DNA of 64,000 bases from positions 248,001-312,000 of the forward strand of contig JBLDXI010000029.1 of assembly GCA_047495785.1 (NCBI GenBank), in the 5' to 3' direction. A program made the translations under genes and the position numbers. Positions 13,666-64,000 of this stretch are shown piece by piece (the stretch's first letter is position 1; the number at the start of each line of letters is the position of its first letter). Below the pieces are notes generated by a model. It was not told the DNA's origin, did no database searches, and was given only the letters and a program-made list of their open reading frames with translations. Source of the stretch: Lepidodermella squamata. Lineage: Eukaryota > Animalia > Gastrotricha.

Positions 13666-16600
13666 TCAGCAAGACTCCTTCTTGCATTCACCGCCGCGAG
13701 ACTTAAGCAATTTGATGACCTCGCCTTGCTTGTAGTATACAGCATAGTCCGATGGCGTGTAGCCATCGTCGCCAGCTTCGTTGATGTCAGCGCCGCGGTC
13801 CAGCAACAGCCGAGCGACTTCCAAATTTCCGTGTATAGCCGCAGTCGTCAGGGGCCTCCAGCCGTCGCTCAATTTGCTGTCAACGGCCGCTCCTCGTTTG
13901 ATCAGCAAACGCACGACCTCCAACAAGTTGTTTCCGGAGGCGAGGTACAATGGCGTGTAGCCCCATGTGCTTTCTCTACTGTCAACCTCCGCGCCGCGTT
14001 CAAGCAACAGGCGAACAATTTCCAACCGCTTGTATTCGTTGCCGTAGCATTGGGCCACTCTGTGCAGAATTGTACCGTTGCGAACTTTGCCGTAACAACT
14101 GCTGTACTCGGCCGGGTCACGCCAGTCCGGATCGAATTTTCCGCGAGCTGCCTTATCGATTTGGCTCACAAGTCTTCGCACTCCAGCAGAGTCAGCGTCA
14201 GCAGCTGCCTGGCCCAAGCGCGTGTAAAGAGGCAGCAAACTGCTTTTAGCCGGGGAGATCTGCAATGAAAATTGAAGATATTTAAGAAAGGTAAATTCTA
14301 TGAACCAGACAATCTATATAATCTTCCGAAAATTAGCTTCACCTACCGTGGTCAACAATTTGGCGATTTCGCCGAAACCCCTGCTTTTAGCAAAATCTAA
14401 AGCAGTTTCGCCCGTTGACTTTCTGATGTTGACATCAGCTCCGCGTGCTAACAGCATTTCCACCACATCCTTACGACCACTGTAGGCGGCCTCAATCAGC
14501 GGCGTTGCGCCATCAGAGCCTCTAGCATTGATTGAAGCTCCAGCGGCTATCAAAGCATCAAGAATGTCAGCATTGGCTGCGTAGGCTGCTTTGTGCACGG
14601 CCGTGACGCCGTCTTTGTCGCGCCATTTGAAGTCGAGCGAGCCTTGCTGCAGCAAACGCTTGACAGTGTCAAGATCATCGCGGCCAGCAGCTTCGTTTAA
14701 CTGCCGCTGTACGACAACTGTCGGCATGCGGGCTGTAGATGTAGGCCTCGTTACGATTAGCGTGGAGGAGACTCCCTAAGATAACATAAACGATTAAGTA
14801 TTTCAACGTTTTGGACCTTTGGAATTGAAATTTGTTGAGAGTCACGCCTATAACCCATTTTTGGCAAGCTCAATGGCCTATAACACAAATACAAAAGTTG
14901 GAAAAACGAGTCGCAGCGGTTGGCCGAAAATCGTTTGATAGGGTTATTATCTTAATTATCTGTTCAACAGGAAATTTCAAAATTTTTTATTCACACAAGT
15001 TCATGATTCCCAAAAATTTGAGCTTTAGCATTGTTTTAGTTTTGCATACCTCAGCGCCGGAGAGGATCTGGATGATATTATTGAAACCTTTTTGCCTTGC
15101 GATGCTGATAGCGCTTCTCGCACCAACCGTCACCGATTTATCCGCTCCCCTCTCAACGAGTAGCTCAACGACCGCCACGTGCCCATATTCAACTGCAATC
15201 ATGAGTGGTGTCATGCCGTCCAGCCGCTGAGAATTCATCTCGGCTCCATGATCTAACAACGCAGCGACTACTACAGGTTGTCCGGCAAAGGCGGCCTTGT
15301 GCAGAGCGGTGGATCCGGTTGCATCACGCCATTTCAAGTCCAGACGTTCATCTTCAAGCAGCCGTAGTACATCTTCGTAGTTGACTCGAACAACGGCATC
15401 GTTCAATGCTTGTTGACGCATGATCTTTTCCAAGTCCAAAGCCCGAGCAGTGGTCGCAGGAGTTTCTGTTGTTGCGATGATCGTGAAAAGCTGGATAAAA
15501 TCAATATTATTTCCAGCCAGGGAACCAGCTGTTTGACCATCGTCAGCAACTACCCGGGAATCAGCTCCGTTCTGGATCAAATACTTGGCGATTTCAAGGT
15601 GAGCATTTTTCGCAGCTAGCATCAGAGCAGTGTAACCATCCTGAGCCATAGCATTGATATCAGCGTCGTATTCGACCAGAGCCTTAACGTTAGCCAACCG
15701 GCCATATTCAGCTGCTGCCATTAAAGCGGTTTTTCCATTGGCTTCGTCGCGGCCATTGACATTCGCGCCAGATTCGATGAGGTATTCAACGATTTCAGAG
15801 GAGCTAGTTTTCGCAGCGGCGATTTCCAGAACTCTTGAACCATACTTAGTCTCCTTGGTATTTAAATTGGCACCGGCTTCCACGAGAGTTTTGACCAATT
15901 CTAGAGGAGCCTCAAGGTCCAAGGCAATGTGAAGGGCCGTTCCATTGACGATAGTCCAAGTGCCACGCTCTGATGAATCACGCCAATTAACGTCGACATC
16001 TCTATCCTCTAGTAGCTCGCGAACTTTGACGATATTCTGCTCTGTGATCGCTTTCATGAATTCCACTTGCTTGGCAACCAAATCCTTAACAAGATCATGC
16101 GAATGAGGATGAGTTTTAGACGTTGGTTACCTTTTGGTTACAGTTGCTGATATCTGGATACCACGTTGAGTTATCAAAGCAAGTTGAGCCGAGCGGACCA
16201 TTTGTGCATTCGTAGCCTTTGTTGCATTTCAGATAGATCGATGTGAATGGCGAAACAGCTGGGCCTTTGAGAACTTGGCCAGTATGAAGATCCAGCAGAA
16301 CACCGTTGGAAACCTCTGGTACCAGACATGAGCCTATTCAAGAACAAAATACATATAAGACCTCGAAGGATCTAATTCAGCTGTGAGCAGCCTTCATCAA
16401 CAATATTGCTGGTCAAATGAAATGCGTATGATTATTTTAGAATTTCCGTGTTATCGTTTTTTGAAACCGAAGAGCTGTTACCTCTGGGGCTGCAAATTCC
16501 AGGCTTTGACCAGCTGCCGTTGTTCGAGCATGCAACGAAGTCAGCTCCATGCAGTTCGTAGCCATCGTTACAGGAAACTGCGACGATGCTTCCCGGGGTG

Positions 16601-19600
16601 GTCTCTGAGCCATCATCCACTAACCCATTCGGAATTGCCGGAATCTCGCCACAGTCTGATACAGACACATAACCAATAAAAGTAATTGTATGAGTTCTTA
16701 AATCAGTTCTACCTAAATGAGATTCAACACAGGAGCCTGGCTGAGACCAAGTGCCATTCATTTGGCAAACAATGGCACCAGGGCCTTCCAAGACCCAGGG
16801 CTCCATGCATTTGATCAGAACGACAGTGCCCTGGCGAAACGGCTTTTCAGGTAAGTTAATTTCAGAGTTGAAAATTGAAGGCGGTTCATCGTTGCAAAGA
16901 GCTACACATTCGCCATCCACCAACCAGGATTCTGATACTGCTGAATACTTGACCGAACTTTGACCGACAAGCGAAAATCCCGCGGCACACGTAATCGTTC
17001 CGATCTCTGAGCAATCGACCTCGTTATCAATGAAGTATTCTATCGATCCATGGGAAACTATCATTGGCTTGGTGGATTGAACTATCCAAAAAGTTGATAT
17101 AATGTGTCAATGATTTCTAGTGATTTCTTACCTGCATGGAATTTCTGAAATTTAGCCATTTCGCCATCACCAAACTTACATTTGGTTAGGCTCTGTGGCG
17201 CGGGGCTATTTGAGCCTCGTTCACACTTGCCCGATCGGCGCATAACATCGAGAACCTGGTCATATCCAGCTAACCTTGCCCAATCAAAAATGCCAACATT
17301 TCCGAAAGCGCCCGCACACGGTGCATTGAATTTGTTGAAAAGGAGGTCGACCAGAGCCGGGCAGTCACGATCGATAGCCAGCATCAGCAAAGTCTTCCCC
17401 AGTGGGTCCTTCAGAGCCAAAGCTTTCGAAAGCTGCTCCGAATCAGAGGAAAGGATTAAAAGAATAGCCTCGACAGTCGATACGCCAGAATCGCTGCATC
17501 TAGCCGCATTGAGCAATGGAGTCCGGCCATAACTATCCGCCGTTATCGCGATTTCACGATTGTGCGTGAGCAGTAGCCTAACCATGTCGGGCTGCTGTGC
17601 GGCGATCGCGTGAAGCAATGCGATGGTGCCGTGATTGTTCGATGCTTCCTCCCTGAAGCTATCCGCGAAGATCTCTTTCAATAGAACCTCAACGAAAGCG
17701 CGAGCATTCCTCTCCACGGCCAATGTGAGCACTGTTCGGTTTTCTTTATCTCGGCTATCGAAGAGACCGCTCTGCTCGCTTGAAAACAAGCCCAGCAAAG
17801 CCACGTCAGCTTCGGCTACGGACAAAAGAGAGGTTAATGAGTTAGGAGTTAGGAATAAAGCTCCAACCAAGAATTTTTTCGAAATTGAGCCCGAAATGTC
17901 AACGCGAGCAGATTATCCCTCGAAAATAAATCCATTTTGGAAATACCTGTGATAATCAAATTCGTCCATCTGGCAGTTAACTGTTTCTGAACTATGTCTT
18001 CAAAACAGAGGGACTGCGCTATTTCCGCAAAGTTTTCCTAAACGCTCCGCCGCCGCAGAGCTCTGATTAAATATTTTACTTGAACATTTCGACGTGCTTA
18101 TTCTTAAAATTCACTTTTTACGTAGCTTTTTTACATTATTCCCGAAACTGGGAATGCGCAGTGTAATTTTAAAACAAAGCATAAAATAAAATAAAATCGA
18201 AAATAATCCTGTGTACAGTTTGATCAAACCCTAAGTAATCCATTGCCTTTTTTACAGCTGAGCTTTTCAACTTTTTCTAAAAACGGATGAATGTCTCTTA
18301 AATAAATAAATAAATAAATAAATAAATCGTTTTGCGCAATCGATGACGGTCAAACGAAATTTAGGAAATTTGGCTGGAGACGGCAGAATCATTCAAAATT
18401 AAATTTGATAATTTGTAATTTCATTGAAAGAATTGATGGAATATTATATATTTCCGAATTTTTCTATAGCTTTTGCAGCTCAACCTTGCCAATTCTTTAC
18501 CGTCAATGTCCCCGTAAAATTCTTGTAAAAATATTTTATTTTTGTGAAATAAAACCTGGAAGATTGTTTAAAAATTTAGCTCTCAGTATGATTTCGTAAT
18601 TAAGCAGTATGCTAAAAATTTAGATTATTGGAATGGAGATGCTATCTTGCTCTAATTTTAAAAATTTACGGCTCCAAATGTGAAATAATATTGTAGCTAA
18701 GCTTACTTCTATCGATTGACTGGTCAGATTGAAGAGCCATAGCATGGGCGGCATTTCGGCCTTTCGAATCGGTGGCGGCTAGATCAGCGTCATGCTCCTG
18801 CAACACTTTGACACACTCCAGCTGTCGCATGTAACTCGCAAAGTGAACCAGCGGCCCCCGATCGGCGCCCTTGACATCCCGGTTTCCTGACGTGTAAGCG
18901 CACGTCTCAGACTTGACCAAACTCCTCGTGCCCTCTTGAATAGAAAACAGCACTCGCAGAAATTCGCAGTTGCCTTTTCGAATCGCGTAGCACAGCGGCG
19001 TCTCGTCATTCTCATCCACAGCCGTTGCTTTGAAAAACAGCTTCGCAAACTGATTACGCAACATTTCGATTTTGTTCTCTTCAGCAATAACGTGCGACGA
19101 CGTTTTCACATTCTGCTTTGATGATCTCGACAATGACTGGTCAGGGAAGAACAGCTTGATCATCGCTTGGTTCTTGCTCGCCAGCGCGATTTCGAAAGCA
19201 AAGCCGCCACTGCGGTCTCTGACGTTAGGATCAGCCCCACGTTCCAAAAGCCCTTTCGCCACTTCAACGGCACGAAGCGAATGCGATTTAACAGCATAGA
19301 ACAAAGGTGTTTGGCCCTGCCAAGTTTCAGCATTGACGATTTGCTTCTTCTTATCGTCGCTCGCCTTTTCGAGTAAGAAATCAATCATCTTCAGGTAACC
19401 ATTCAGAGCAGCGAGGTGAATTGGCTGCTCGCCAAGGTTGTTACGAGCCTCGACATCTGCGCCAACTTCGTCAATGAGAAATCTCGCGGTCTTAGAAGCG
19501 TTGTAAGCAGCTGCAACGTGCAACGGCGTGTGGCCAGTGGCGTTTTGCGTCGCTTTCAGTTCACCGATGTCCGAGAATTCATTTCTGATTCTTGCAATGA

Positions 19601-20141: not shown

Positions 20142-20688
20142 GGTTAAAACGTTTATGGTTTAGAATGATCTAGTTTTCATGCCGCGGTGGAATTGCAAGC
20201 TTAAAGGTGCCAGCTTAAATTGTCATCGCGTGTCAATCAGGTGCGCAGCCTTGACCCCACCCAAAGTGTACCATTTGTTTTTGTATTGTTTACTAAGTTG
20301 CTTGAGCTTTCTTGAATGACGGCCCAAAATATAATTTTTAAAAAGTGGAGCGCTGGTAACTTTTCAGAAGTTCAGTTATGACTCTAAGATCTTACAAATA
20401 ATATAGGCCGAGGAGAAGGGAGGCTGAAGAGTCAGGTGATTTTATTCGATCGCCTCATTTTTTGCGAACCGGCTTCAGATTTTGAATGACTTCAAAACAA
20501 CATCTTTAGCTAATATTGTAAATATTTTTTTATAAAGCAATTCTAGTCAATTAAATTCAAGTCAGTCCCTTTTCCAAGTAAAGCAGATGGTTATATATTC
20601 AGGATTTTGAAGGTCAAAGCTGTAAACAGTTCTTTGCAAGAAACCAGAGCAAGCAAACGTCAATTTTGTGTAATCAGGGCGAGAATTT

Positions 20689-21624
20689 TTAGATATTAGC
20701 CTTCGGGAAATCAGTTGTTTTAGACTTGCGATCCCACGTGAACCATCCAAAGTTTTTCTCAAACGTCGCGCCCATCGAATTGTCATCCCAACGCCTGTCG
20801 TAGAAAGAAAACCAGAACGCCGGCTTTCCTTTGGTCGCCCCACCAGTTACCCACTTCGAAACAGCTTGGTAGTACTGCTTTGAAGTTTCCAAACTGCCTG
20901 GAACGCCATTGCTATAGCCAACCCCACCGGCAGTTGGGAAGCCAGTTTCGGTCAGAACGACCTTGGAATTGTCATAGCGCTGCATCATTTTTTGCCACTG
21001 AGAATCAAGAGGCGATATGGGATTTTTCGTGTCGTAGTACCCAAAGTAGGGGTAGATGTTGACTCCGATGATATCGCATGCGTTAGCCAATTTCGTAGTT
21101 TCCGATTTGATAGAGTCTGAAACCCATTCCGTGATGCGCTGGACAGTTCCAACCGGGACACTGCGACCAGTCGCTTTCTTCACTGCGTCTTTAATTCCAT
21201 TAATCCTCGCGATAATATCATCAGCCGTGAATGGGCCGTTAGGTTTGAGATTTTCGTTACCGACCAGGATAGCTAGGACGGTATCTGGGAAGGCTTTCAC
21301 TGCGTCGACAGCTGACTGGACCTGGGATTGGTACCAGCCTTCGTTTGTCATGAAAACTCCCAGGTAGAGTTTAACCTTGTACTTGGCGGCAGCTGGAGCG
21401 ACAGGGACGCCGTAGAAGTTCGAGTAGAAGGTCCTCACGTATTTAACATACTTCGACATGTTGGCGAAATCGTCGTCCATAGCCTTGGCGAGGTTGCCGA
21501 GAGTGCCGCCGTTTAGTGGGTACTCTGAGTTGTGCATGGCGTCGTAGTTGGCGCCCAAAAGGGCCTGGCCATAAACCTGACAGCCAGCAAGAGCCAGCAG
21601 GAAGATTAGACCGCCTAAATACAT
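20689..21624 (-). CDS. Secreted glycoside hydrolase family 17 (beta-1,3-glucanase/glucanosyltransferase)
   Basis: 311 aa, uninterrupted CDS. Signal peptide MYLGGLIFLLALAGCQVYG. GH17 motifs VRTFY, ILVGNE (acid/base Glu), DIIGVNIYPYF, LTETGFPT (nucleophile Glu), FWFSFYD, FEKNFG. Confidence 0.9.
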   Translation of the reverse strand: MYLGGLIFLLALAGCQVYGQALLGANYDAMHNSEYPLNGGTLGNLAKAMDDDFANMSKYVKYVRTFYSNFYGVPVAPAAAKYKVKLYLGVFMTNEGWYQSQVQSAVDAVKAFPDTVLAILVGNENLKPNGPFTADDIIARINGIKDAVKKATGRSVPVGTVQRITEWVSDSIKSETTKLANACDIIGVNIYPYFGYYDTKNPISPLDSQWQKMMQRYDNSKVVLTETGFPTAGGVGYSNGVPGSLETSKQYYQAVSKWVTGGATKGKPAFWFSFYDRRWDDNSMGATFEKNFGWFTWDRKSKTTDFPKANI

Positions 21625-22258
21625 CTTTTATCGGCAAAGCTAAATAAAGAAAAGTAAGTGTTGAAATAGTGGATGGAAATTTCTAGTTTGTAGATTTTGA
21701 TTAGTTCTGAGGCCTTGAAGTAAATGCTAAAGTAAAGTAAAAAGTAAAGTAAGTAAAGGAAGACATATCGGGAGCAATTCCGAAACGGACTGCACGTAGA
21801 CGGTGTAAAAAGCATGAGAGTTGATCGGATAACGAATCAAGAGCAATTCCGTTTTCAAATAAAGCATGAAATAGTTCTTCTTTTTATGTCTCGATTCTCC
21901 ATGTTAGCGGTGATTTTTTGCAAAGGCTGTTGACGCACGTTAATATGACGCCGATTATTGTTTACACAGCTGAACAATTTGGCTGTTTTTTCGCTCTCAT
22001 CCTCGGAATCTGGGCTCTGACTTTTGACACCATTCCTTGAGCAATTTATGCACTTCAGTATCTGCTTCAGTAAACTCTGATTTGCAGTTAGCATTAATCT
22101 GAGTTATAACTGCGATTTGTGTTCATCTCAGTTAACTCAGAGTTCTGAAAAAAATGAATACGGAAATGTTTTCTGCAATATTTGTTGAGAAAAACTTTCC
22201 ATCCTTACTCTCATCCGTTATCCTTGGCGTTATCAAACTAAGAATAAAAGCTTATGTT

Positions 22259-23593
22259 TTATTGCTGAAAAATTGCAACAAAAATTAAGAATGGTACCAG
22301 CCATTTTTGCGTGATGTAAGTTCTTTGCCCGAACTCGCTACACGATGATTCGAGCTGGTAAGCTTCGAGCTGATACGGCGGTGAGGTAGTGAAGAATAGT
22401 GTTTTGTTGTGATAGACCATCCGATCGGCTTTAAAGCCTTTAATCACAAACTCCCCACTGGATTTGTCCATGGCCGATAGCGAGTTACAAGCTCGAGAGA
22501 AGACGTAGTCGTTGATCACGATAACTCGATCTCGATAAGACGAGCCTTTCCAGTAACAAAAATAAGTCGCTACGACTTGTCCATCAGAATTTCTCACAAC
22601 AACAACAGCATTGTTCCGAGCACTGACTAAATAGGTGTAGGTGCCATCTGTGCCCCAACTTTCGTTATTCTCCAGGATTTTATCCGATCGCCACAGCTCG
22701 ACCTGTCGATTGATTGCTATTCCATGCAGATTGACCATGCAATCGCTGGCCCATAACAGACTGCAGGTGTAACTTGTGGCAATTGCGATTTCATTTGATA
22801 TAACAGGCGACCACCAAAACATGTCTGCGCCCAATTCATCGGACGATTGGAACGTAAACGACCACAGCTCGTCGCCAGAAACAGGGTCCAGTTCAGCTAG
22901 TCGATACGGCAAGGAGATAAAAAGCCTCCGCTTTTGATAAACCGTAGCTGAGTACGTTGTATTGGGACTAAAATCTGCCGTGAAAATCGGTTTTAACGTC
23001 GGTAGCTCATAAGCTATGATTTCATTGGCCCGCCCAGTGTAAACGACCCCCAATTCATCAATATTTGAGTTTGAAAATCCTATATTAGATGGGCCTGTTT
23101 TACCGTGTAAGTAGGTTCTCGCGGTTATCACTTTAAGTTGATTGATGTCTATCACTAAATTGACCTCATAATTCGAAGCATCGCCCCGTATGAAGATGTA
23201 AAATCTGTCGTCTCGGCCCTTTGCAACAATAGGCGTGCTGATAGTCGAGAAGTATCCGTATGGCTGATTTTTGAATAAAGGAATCGATTTCTTCAACTGG
23301 CCACTTTTTTCGTCGATCGCATGGAGTAGGCCGAGCTTGTCCGCGTAGAATACCAGTCCTGCGTAGATTATAGGTAGCGATTCAAGGCAAAGAGATTCAG
23401 GCATTGCGTGGGTCCATAACTGTTTCGGCCGTTTAAGCCGTGGTCCTAGTGTTTCGTTTTTGAAACCAGTGTGACCTGCGTCACCATCGAAATGCGTCCA
23501 AGGCCCGTCGTAGATTTTCCGCGAATCCGAAACCAAACATGCACCGAACGAGGTCAATAGGCTTGAGTGGATAAGTGTTGGAAAAACAAACAT
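22259..23593 (-). CDS. PQQ-like / BamB-type beta-propeller protein with signal peptide and hydrophobic C-terminal tail
   Basis: 444 aa, single exon. N-terminal WTHFDGDAGHTGF...KQLW motif. Blade motifs PIIYAGLVFYADKLGLLHAIDEKSGQL, LAELDPVSGDELW, LHGIAINRQVELW, LSAMDKSSGE. C-terminus WLVPFLIFVAIF. Confidence 0.7.
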   Translation of the reverse strand: MFVFPTLIHSSLLTSFGACLVSDSRKIYDGPWTHFDGDAGHTGFKNETLGPRLKRPKQLWTHAMPESLCLESLPIIYAGLVFYADKLGLLHAIDEKSGQLKKSIPLFKNQPYGYFSTISTPIVAKGRDDRFYIFIRGDASNYEVNLVIDINQLKVITARTYLHGKTGPSNIGFSNSNIDELGVVYTGRANEIIAYELPTLKPIFTADFSPNTTYSATVYQKRRLFISLPYRLAELDPVSGDELWSFTFQSSDELGADMFWWSPVISNEIAIATSYTCSLLWASDCMVNLHGIAINRQVELWRSDKILENNESWGTDGTYTYLVSARNNAVVVVRNSDGQVVATYFCYWKGSSYRDRVIVINDYVFSRACNSLSAMDKSSGEFVIKGFKADRMVYHNKTLFFTTSPPYQLEAYQLESSCSEFGQRTYITQKWLVPFLIFVAIFQQ

Positions 23594-61828: not shown

Positions 61829-64000
61829 TTAACAGCTTGGATTGTCCGTGGTAATGTCGCAAACCAACTTCTCGGAAATCCACGATCCAAAGGGCTCAAG
61901 GTCTGCAAACAGCGGTAACTTATTGGCTGAACATTTTTCATCGCGGCCAAAATAAATCCCGTACTGCAAAAAATTAGCAATCAAATAAATAGATTATTTT
62001 TAAATGTTTGTCTTTAGTACCTGCAAAAGGCTGTCTCCTAGTCCTGATTTCGCGTCGTTAAGTGATTGGAACATAAGCGGGGAGCCTTCATCACCGTCGC
62101 AGGGCACATTCAAATCACGAGTGGCAGATTGGAAGCAGCTGTCAGTCGCTGGTTCGAACCCATCTTTCCAAGAAATCACGCAGTTTTCATCATCGAGCTT
62201 CACGCCATGAACAAATCTTGGCAACGTTCTACTTGTCGGGCCGGATCGGCCATTTTTACCCCAGCCGGCTGTAAACTGGAATGAGCTGTGATCGATACTG
62301 TTTGAATCTTTGCCATAGATCGAAATGTCGTTTACGTAAGCTGAGGTCATGTCGATTGGTGATTTCAACTTCAGCAGAGCAATGTCTCGTTCTGAGTTAC
62401 CGGATCGAATAACGTTGGATATGGCATGCGTCTTTTTGTAGACAGAAGAGACTGCGAAGTCGTGAACACCAGTCACAACTGGAAGCTTGTATGCATCGCT
62501 TGAATTCACGCATTTAGCCGAGGTTAGGACCCACAGTTCGTCGATAATCGAAACAGTGCACATGGTTTCATTGCCGAATACGTTGCCAAGGACGCCGAGC
62601 CATGGAAACTGACCAGCTCGTGGGATTTGAGCTGATGACGACGTGTGAGCTGGAATCGGTGACAGCGGCAACTTCGGCTGTCCAGGCATCGCGACTTCAT
62701 GAGTGTTGCGGCAGGCGCTAATTAGACGCTGGATCTCGGGCCAGGATAGGTCTGAGTAGTAAACCGATAAGCAGGATAGGCTGTCTCCACGGGCTAACGC
62801 CCCGCCGACCCAAGCAAAGCCAATTTCTACGCCGGTAATACCGCTCATGTCAACCGCGACAGTTTTGGTTGTCTTTTGGGCGACACCATGCTTGTTGTAG
62901 ATGGTGATTTGCTGAGAAAACGCGTTATAACTGAAGCTAACGAAATTCCAGACATAGTCTGTGCTCAGCATTGTAGATGCCACATCGTATCCTCCAGCAG
63001 ATAGGATTACTTTATTACCAGAGTAGTAAATTTGTGGCAGCCTGCGAGATGAGGGAATCGAGTCCGCCGAGAACTGAAATACTCCACCCTTCGAGTCTTT
63101 TTTACCCAGCCTGAGGAAAAACGAGACAGTGAAAGACTTTTTCGTATTTTGGAAAGCAGAATGCGAGAATCGGAACATTCCATTATCAGTGTCTTTTGCT
63201 GATACGATTGCGTTGAGCTCCCCTCCGAATGGACCGTTCGCTGGGACGAAATAACCATTGGTAGGAAAACTAGGGGAAAGGTCGTTCTTGCTCAAATCTT
63301 TAAACTTGTACTTATTGGTTAGGGGCCAGACTGCTATCAGGTTGTCAGTTGAAGGCCACATTGACGGGTACTCGCCCTTGTATTTGCAGGCATCACTCAG
63401 CTGACTGATATCATTCGGGCTAAGAACAGAGCTGTGAACTGTCACGCATGCAATAGCTTCGTTCGATTTCAAAATATGCGAAGCGCCATTTTTATCCTTC
63501 GCATAGCCAACAACGTAGCCTGTCATCGAGGTTGGCTCGATATAGAAGTCTCTGAAGCTCTGCTTCACAAAACCAGCTGAGTCGTAGAGTGTTACTTCAT
63601 TATTTGCATCGTCGTAGGTAACAGCGATGAAATTCCACTGGGATGGTGCAAAGAAATTTTCGGCTTTCTCAACGCGGATCGATGCGAATTTCTCGCTATA
63701 GCCGTAAACTTCAAGCGCGTAGCCTCGTCGTATGAGGCCAAGTCTTCTCGGCATAGTGTTTTCCTCCGAAAATATGCCAGTAGTTTCATAGGTGTAAGCA
63801 TTGTAATACATTGTATAAGTGAAGCTGGTGTAAGTGTTCTTAGTGGCGTTGTAGTAAACCATGGCGCTGCTACTCGATTTGACGCTGTAGCTCGACTGCG
63901 GCTCACCGAAAGGCCCATTGTATCTGGAATTTACCACCGCATTGCCGCTCGAGCTGATCGCCTGCTTGCCCGACAGGTCGTTAACACCATTTTTCGCGTC
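61829..64000 (-). CDS. LamG/pentraxin-like tandem domains plus catalytically dead trypsin-like domain (5' end outside window)
   Basis: Open from the window edge to 62021, with a last exon 61963-61829 (YGIYFG...LEPFGSWI...PSC*). Repeated LamG-like units (lIAVWPL...DLS.N...GPFG...sFT..f....WNF...tY). Trypsin-like GQFPW, CTVSIIDELWVLTSAKC, DIALLKL, PCDGDEGSPL. Confidence 0.8.

Follow-up and report, generated by a model that had tools for sequence, protein, structure and literature searches.

In the gastrotrich Lepidodermella squamata, a gene encoding a protein of glycoside hydrolase family 17 (GH17) is found at positions 20689-21624, on the minus strand, of a 64 000-nucleotide stretch of contig JBLDXI010000029.1 (positions 248 001 to 312 000 of the contig; this whole stretch is hereafter called the window). 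This gene probably encodes a secreted enzyme acting on beta-1,3-glucan. It belongs to a gastrotrich family of at least eight paralogs and most likely derives, by an old horizontal transfer, from an oomycete or from a lineage closely related to the oomycetes. In animals, beta-1,3-glucanases and beta-glucan recognition proteins of family GH16 deal with the same presumed substrate in an extracellular digestive or immune role. However, GH16 proteins are beta-jelly-rolls without any sequence relation to the triosephosphate isomerase (TIM) barrel of the window protein, and since GH16 constitutes the usual animal solution, a GH17 in an animal is unusual. As recently stated in 2025, GH17 had been undocumented in animals before the description of plant-derived genes in a whitefly (PMC11800479).

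The coding sequence is complete, as indicated by the open reading frame (ORF) listing, the family profile and the structure model, and consists of a single exon of 311 codons plus the stop, opening with ATG and free of internal stop codons. An in-frame TAA is read 6 nt upstream of the ATG (21628-21630, minus strand), and the protein thus starts at that ATG, any upstream exon being only untranslated. The initial annotation of this DNA, made from the sequence alone, had described an uninterrupted coding sequence with both catalytic glutamate motifs; its coordinates are exact, the reading frame is intact, E124 and E226 are present, and the motifs that it quoted agree with the consensus of a 60-sequence alignment of the family. 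Residues 1-20 (21565-21624, minus strand) form a probable signal peptide, assigned from the hydrophobic N-terminus MYLGGLIFLLALAGCQVYGQ. These residues are the sole low-confidence, non-barrel segment of the AlphaFold model, and the similarity to all relatives starts at about residue 21. The N-terminus therefore fits a probable cleaved signal peptide, by which the protein would be secreted. No N-terminal PAN domain is present, the signal peptide running directly into the barrel, and there is no C-terminal extension, so that the architecture is that of a bare signal peptide followed by the catalytic domain.

The protein is a GH17, as the initial annotation had stated, and this assignment is upheld by profile, fold and catalytic residues, whereas the curated Pfam threshold is missed by the single sequence. 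The match to PF00332 (Glyco_hydro_17), a model built chiefly from plant-type GH17, reaches 26.3 bits, below the gathering cut-off of 28.2, and covers residues 217-302 only, i.e. the C-terminal third; several close oomycete relatives carry a precomputed match to the same model. To search the PDB, we used a family profile consisting of the alignment of 60 relatives. This profile matched RmBgt17A, a beta-1,3-glucanosyltransferase of Rhizomucor miehei, over the whole domain (4wtp, E 7e-30, profile positions 48-305), followed by the bacterial GH17 laminarinase of Formosa (6fcg, 2e-20) and the catalytic domain of Penicillium sumatraense G7048 (8akp, 2e-17). Plant GH17 structures were matched at 1e-13 to 2e-7 and in the C-terminal third only. 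The AlphaFold2 model, calculated from the 60-sequence alignment, is a (beta/alpha)8 barrel with a mean predicted local distance difference test (pLDDT) score of 94.1 and a predicted template modelling score (pTM) of 0.90. When this model was compared with the PDB by Foldseek, the best nine matches were all GH17 (8akp, 6fcg, 4wtr, 6jms, 4wtp, chains B and A of 3ur8, 2cyg and 3ur7; E 7e-17 to 1e-11). The best solved relative is RmBgt17A (4wtp/4wtr), of the fungal Bgl2/Bgt type, which shares the barrel and the glutamate positions with the window protein (template modelling score of about 0.8 by target length) but only about 20% identity, and which transfers glucan chains in the fungal wall.

The two catalytic glutamates are placed by alignment and by the model. 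Glu124 (codon 21253-21255, minus strand), in the motif VGNEN, occupies an invariant column of the 60-sequence alignment, corresponds to VGSE in RmBgt17A and to VGNE in 6fcg, and ends the model strand 116-124; it would be the acid/base catalyst. Glu226 (codon 20947-20949, minus strand), in the motif TETG and in a nearly invariant column, is located in the model strand 222-227 and would be the nucleophile. It aligns with the glutamate of SETGWP in 4wtp, which is the exact residue substituted by alanine in the active-site mutant 4wtr. With these two residues, the barrel is predicted to act on beta-1,3-glucan by a retaining mechanism.

The gene is not an isolated oddity but belongs to a multigene family of considerable age. 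When the complete assembly (121.2 Mb, 151 contigs) was searched in six frames, at least eight GH17 copies were found on five contigs, which we abbreviate C29 (the contig of the window), C74, C36 (two copies, C36a and C36b), C42 and C3 (three copies, C3a to C3c). The C74 copy is 69-77% identical to the window copy, and the three C3 copies are 36-41% identical to it. The window copy is itself intronless. In the C74 paralog, excision of a 102-nt GT-AG intron restores a perfect alignment with the window protein; C36a and C42 have a common GT-AG intron, of 136 and 125 nt, respectively, at a position that differs from that of the C74 intron. These intron-bearing paralogs were entered exon by exon into the trees, the substitution-rate calculations and the Pfam searches, and translation across the junctions served solely to locate the GT-AG borders. 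Between the C29 and C74 copies, the proportion of nonsynonymous differences (pN) is 0.14-0.20 and that of synonymous differences (pS) is saturated at 0.76-0.86, and the ratio of nonsynonymous to synonymous substitution rates (dN/dS) is 0.07 for C3a/C3b and 0.04 for C36a/C42. The low dN/dS values and the saturated pS between paralogs indicate that the family is old and under purifying selection.

Some copies depart from the architecture of the window copy. The C74 paralog has a cysteine-rich N-terminal part with weak PAN matches (E 9e-4). C3c (C3:1901886-1902725) ends in a hydrophobic C-terminal tail, ...SIFALILLAILSLVM, unlike the window copy, which suggests a glycosylphosphatidylinositol-anchored or membrane-bound form. 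C36b (C36:743419-744230) is probably a pseudogene, judging from the loss of its N-terminal half and of the GT donor of the intron common to C36a and C42.

The resemblance to oomycete enzymes that the initial annotation had proposed was recovered by both protein searches, in which the named relatives are overwhelmingly oomycete. A word-indexed search gave 97 matches: the best are metagenome or transcriptome proteins with 58-62% identity, two Brachionus proteins come next with 57%, and about 57 named oomycete proteins follow, mostly with 41-52%, together with one marginal fungal protein. An exhaustive HMMER search gave 1,239 representatives at E <= 0.001, of which 81 reached E <= 1e-30. Among 30 representatives of the HMMER search that were looked up, 12 carried a name, and these were 10 oomycetes, one green alga (Scenedesmus sp. 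PABB004) and one tardigrade (Paramacrobiotus metropolitanus). The ten oomycetes comprise Saprolegnia, Aphanomyces, Albugo (two proteins), Pythium, Lagenidium, Peronospora and Achlya, and one sequence each in clusters already named. Taken over both searches, the named non-oomycete relatives are the two Brachionus rotifers, Scenedesmus, the tardigrade and the marginal fungus. The oomycete GH17 glucan endo-1,3-beta-glucosidases (Phytophthora, Pythium, Saprolegnia and Aphanomyces; e.g. P0012, P0018 and P0219) share 41-52% identity with the window protein across the catalytic domain, with the same motifs and both glutamates. Some of them carry an N-terminal PAN/apple domain, as do the C74, Brachionus and tardigrade genes, whereas the window copy has neither PAN domain nor C-terminal extension, and its gene stands in an animal genome, whose composition it shares. 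Two saprolegnialean proteins of about 900 residues, P0218 of Aphanomyces stellatus and P0219 of Saprolegnia diclina, contain three tandem GH17 domains, which fall in different subclades of the tree.

The genomic contexts of several relatives outside the named oomycetes are as follows. In Brachionus calyciflorus, the gene consists of a PAN exon, an intron and a single GH17 exon, and adjoins a BK-channel gene. The tardigrade gene (XP_055356949; L023 8001-9874, BHEN01000315.1) has a PAN_4-GH17 architecture and introns, and lies between UDP-glucuronosyltransferase genes; its protein branches farther away within this family, in which oomycetes predominate. The Scenedesmus gene is intron-rich and stands among ordinary genes on a contig of about 80% guanine-plus-cytosine (GC) content, and this PAN-GH17 gene is native to the alga. 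This algal gene (P0223) belongs to the clade of the window gene and is arranged head to head with a PAN-thaumatin gene (JABVCE010000012.1, L018 7944-13342), so that both members of the pair encode secreted, glucan-related proteins that have their N-terminal module in common. A metagenome contig of 52% GC, ptg000877l (ENA ERZ19610909), carries two GH17 genes 2 kb apart (L019 6922-7803 and 10001-11035), and outside the host, no sequences are closer to the window copy than this pair and the Scenedesmus gene. Rfam gave no match on this contig, and the Pfam matches of ORFs on it and on locus L020 did not point to a source organism.

To place the window copy, a careful maximum-likelihood tree of 46 rows was calculated with IQ-TREE under LG+C20+F+G4. 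In this tree, the window copy groups with C74 (support 100/98), both are joined with Scenedesmus and two unnamed sequences (98/89), and this group is joined with the Brachionus clade in a clade of ten rows (96/99). The ten-row clade, the C36 lineage of the host and the C3 lineage of the host, the latter with one metagenome sequence, lie in a polytomy of 34 rows whose other named members are all oomycete. Outside this group follow, in order, an Albugo clade, the tardigrade clade and Phytophthora sequences. A quick tree of 85 rows concurs. The two Brachionus proteins (P0005 and P0007, named 'family 17 glucosidase SCW11' and 'glucan endo-1,3-beta-D-glucosidase'), which share 57% identity and the 96/99 clade with the window copy, are also encoded by animal genes; they come from another phylum and form another subclade, P0005 has a separate PAN exon, and their names are automatic annotations. 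Since the animal genes are nested in oomycete diversity, the transfer would have run from an oomycete-like donor and not in the reverse direction. The candidacy for horizontal transfer put forward in the initial annotation is thus supported by the tree, and an old transfer from oomycetes to animals appears well supported. In this scenario, the family ancestor would have entered the animal lineage long ago, its donor being an oomycete or a close relative, and would thereafter have duplicated, adopted the composition of the host and acquired introns in part of the copies, while purifying selection was maintained.

The presence of the family in three animal phyla could also be read as vertical inheritance, i.e. 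a GH17 of the eukaryotic or metazoan ancestor that only a few small invertebrates retained while all others lost it. We consider this highly improbable, because the animal sequences are nested among paralogs of oomycetes, which branch within as well as outside the group, and because no other named animal appears among the matches despite the very many animal proteomes in the databases. Moreover, the whitefly paper states that GH17 was undocumented in animals until then (PMC11800479). A broad metazoan clade, which had been set beforehand as the outcome that speaks against a transfer, was not seen; the other animals among the named matches are only rotifers and, farther away, the tardigrade.

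How often the gene was transferred is a further question. Several independent transfers may have taken place, from related freshwater oomycetes to gastrotrichs, rotifers, a tardigrade and a green alga, the host lineages C29/C74, C36/C42 and C3 being perhaps separate acquisitions; we give this proposal somewhat less than an even chance. It is in line with the free tree, in which the three host lineages are not grouped and the tardigrade clade stands far out, and with the distribution of the gene, whose holders belong to distant phyla with no other named animal among the matches. In addition, oomycetes are parasites of such animals, according to a reference cited in PMC4316629. However, the approximately unbiased (AU) test does not reject one clade of all 14 non-oomycete rows tested, which do not include the tardigrade pair (p 0.35), and the clade uniting the window copy and Brachionus (96/99) could equally result from one transfer or from animal-to-animal spread. 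An animals-only clade without the alga group is likewise not rejected (AU test, p 0.45). It is possible, if rather doubtful, that an oomycete-type and often PAN-linked GH17 lineage moved repeatedly among freshwater micro-eukaryotes, namely gastrotrichs, monogonont rotifers, a chlorophyte and, with a sister lineage, tardigrades. If so, the gastrotrich/rotifer/alga clade would record eukaryote-to-eukaryote gene sharing in a pond community and not a single ancient transfer, and the animals would have recruited these GH17 enzymes for feeding on, or fighting, organisms with beta-glucan walls.

Several observations weigh against an enzyme cutting beta-1,3-glucan and acquired from an oomycete by an old transfer. 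The backbone of the tree is a polytomy, and neither the donor lineage nor the number of transfers is fixed by it. The presence of a green-alga gene inside the 'animal' clade complicates a simple story from oomycete to animal. The taxonomy of the relatives counts named sequences only, most of the metagenomic relatives being without an organism name. The closest solved relative, RmBgt17A, is a transglycosylase and not a hydrolase, so that the window enzyme may act as a hydrolase or as a transferase. Finally, the DNA of the L. squamata assembly was obtained by multiple displacement amplification (MDA), which yields chimeric reads (PMC11660948).

This last point raises the possibility that the gene of a co-amplified oomycete or alga was joined to animal DNA by amplification chimeras, all the more as 370 non-metazoan contigs, defined by non-metazoan best hits, had been taken out of this MDA-derived assembly, which in its published form has 122 Mbp, 157 contigs and 43% GC (PMC11660948). 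However, the removal of such contigs also implies that the GH17 contig passed as metazoan overall. An HSC70-like ORF of the assembly matched animal proteins only, the best identities being 75-79% and none belonging to a close species; no COX1 was found in the assembly, and a search with a rotifer spliced-leader sequence, which is weak as evidence, gave no match. The eight paralogs are spread across five large contigs, and three of them contain short GT-AG introns. The composition of the gene (GC 50%, and 59% at third codon positions) is inside the range of neighbouring and housekeeping ORFs of the host, and GC varies along the window from 41 to 51% without any compositional step. Moreover, the gene lies about 270 kb into its contig, which measures at least 312 kb, and is flanked by Sushi/ankyrin-type ORFs and an orphan ORF. 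Acceptor motifs in the style of the host precede three GH17 copies, and none of the public oomycete or algal proteins exceeds 62% identity. Considering the paralogs on five contigs, the introns and the host composition, contamination or a chimeric join is very unlikely, and these features of the sequence point to a gene resident in the host genome. Of the alternatives considered here, we give this one the smallest chance.

With residence in the host and an oomycete-like origin retained, the role of the enzyme can be considered. Oomycete GH17s are thought to remodel the wall of the oomycete itself, and the gastrotrich has no such wall. As the animal lacks a glucan wall, the substrate of its GH17 must be foreign. 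L. squamata feeds on microbes and algae rich in beta-glucan, and the main role would be the extracellular or gut digestion of dietary beta-glucan, with laminarin or chrysolaminarin of algae, or the walls of yeasts, fungi or oomycetes, as putative substrates. With the sequence and its context as a guide, we favour digestion as the probable role and place defence against oomycete or fungal parasites second. In the latter case, the gene and its origin would be the same, but the enzyme would mainly damage the walls of oomycete or fungal parasites, or release glucan fragments for recognition, as part of an immune-like ankyrin/Sushi/protease cluster. We regard defence as the main role as fairly unlikely. 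Digestion is the simpler assumption for an animal that eats beta-glucan-rich microbes and algae, a PAN domain is missing from the window copy, and in other species GH17 genes are not found in synteny with such neighbours. Nevertheless, secreted-type ankyrin/Sushi and trypsin/LamG genes are nearby, PAN/apple binding domains are present on some paralogs and relatives, and in bdelloid rotifers, fungal infection induces glucanases that were gained by horizontal transfer (PMC11258130).

A horizontally acquired GH17 in an animal has been described in Bemisia tabaci, whose Bta06115 and Bta06118 are plant-derived, secreted GH17 beta-1,3-glucanases, one of them shown to cut beta-1,3-glucan (PMC11800479). 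The whitefly genes share this status with the window gene but differ from its family in their plant donor and plant-type branch, and they represent an independent insect event. In our literature searches, neither a description of oomycete-type GH17 from rotifers, gastrotrichs or tardigrades nor a horizontal-transfer analysis for Gastrotricha turned up, and the L. squamata genome paper makes no mention of horizontal transfer (PMC11660948); the Brachionus and tardigrade proteins of the family are already in public databases under automatic names. The oomycete-type branch of GH17 constitutes an established and selected multigene family in a gastrotrich, and rotifers and, at a greater distance, a tardigrade have genes of this branch as well. 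The known transfers of carbohydrate-active enzymes are thereby extended by a case from eukaryote to animal, which suggests how microscopic grazers came to break beta-1,3-glucans and provides a concrete enzyme that is easy to assay. It changes no principle, the acquisition of glycoside hydrolases by small invertebrates being well known, and we see it as a solid but unsurprising finding.

The surroundings of the gene are of animal type. Downstream, ankyrin repeats and Sushi/CCP domains are encoded in several ORF pieces (14987-19523, minus strand; Pfam Ank E 1e-16 to 1e-65, Sushi 6e-19), which belong to one or more host genes. Upstream lies an intronless orphan ORF of 444 codons (22259-23593, minus strand), with hydrophobic N- and C-termini and a weak beta-propeller match (PQQ_2) in Pfam; no homologue of it was found in the word-indexed protein search. 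Throughout the window (1-64000), ankyrin-repeat ORFs predominate on either strand; at least 15 of them have strong Ank matches and some adjoin Sushi/CCP exons. A trypsin/LamG gene is located at 62000-63937. The initial annotation had placed the GH17 gene inside a lectin-ankyrin cluster: the ankyrin cluster is confirmed by Pfam, and the lectin part goes back to nothing but a weak LamG_3 match. No terminal or direct repeats, as a transposon signature, were found around the gene. No synteny was found when the window and the paralog loci were compared with those of relatives, the matches being confined to the GH17 parts.

Two signals that may concern the transcript were read from the sequence on the minus strand. 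A pyrimidine tract ending in TAG (21640-21660), 15 nt before the ATG, corresponds to the acceptor-like motif already pointed out in the initial annotation and is a candidate 3' splice, or trans-splice, acceptor. A similar motif recurs 11-12 nt before the ATGs of the paralogs C36a and C42, and it was not found before four HSP70 genes. A splice acceptor is plausible from this recurrence, and the TAG may be a trans-splice site. On the other side of the gene, about 240 nt past the stop codon, an AATAAA hexamer (20441-20446) provides a candidate poly(A) signal.

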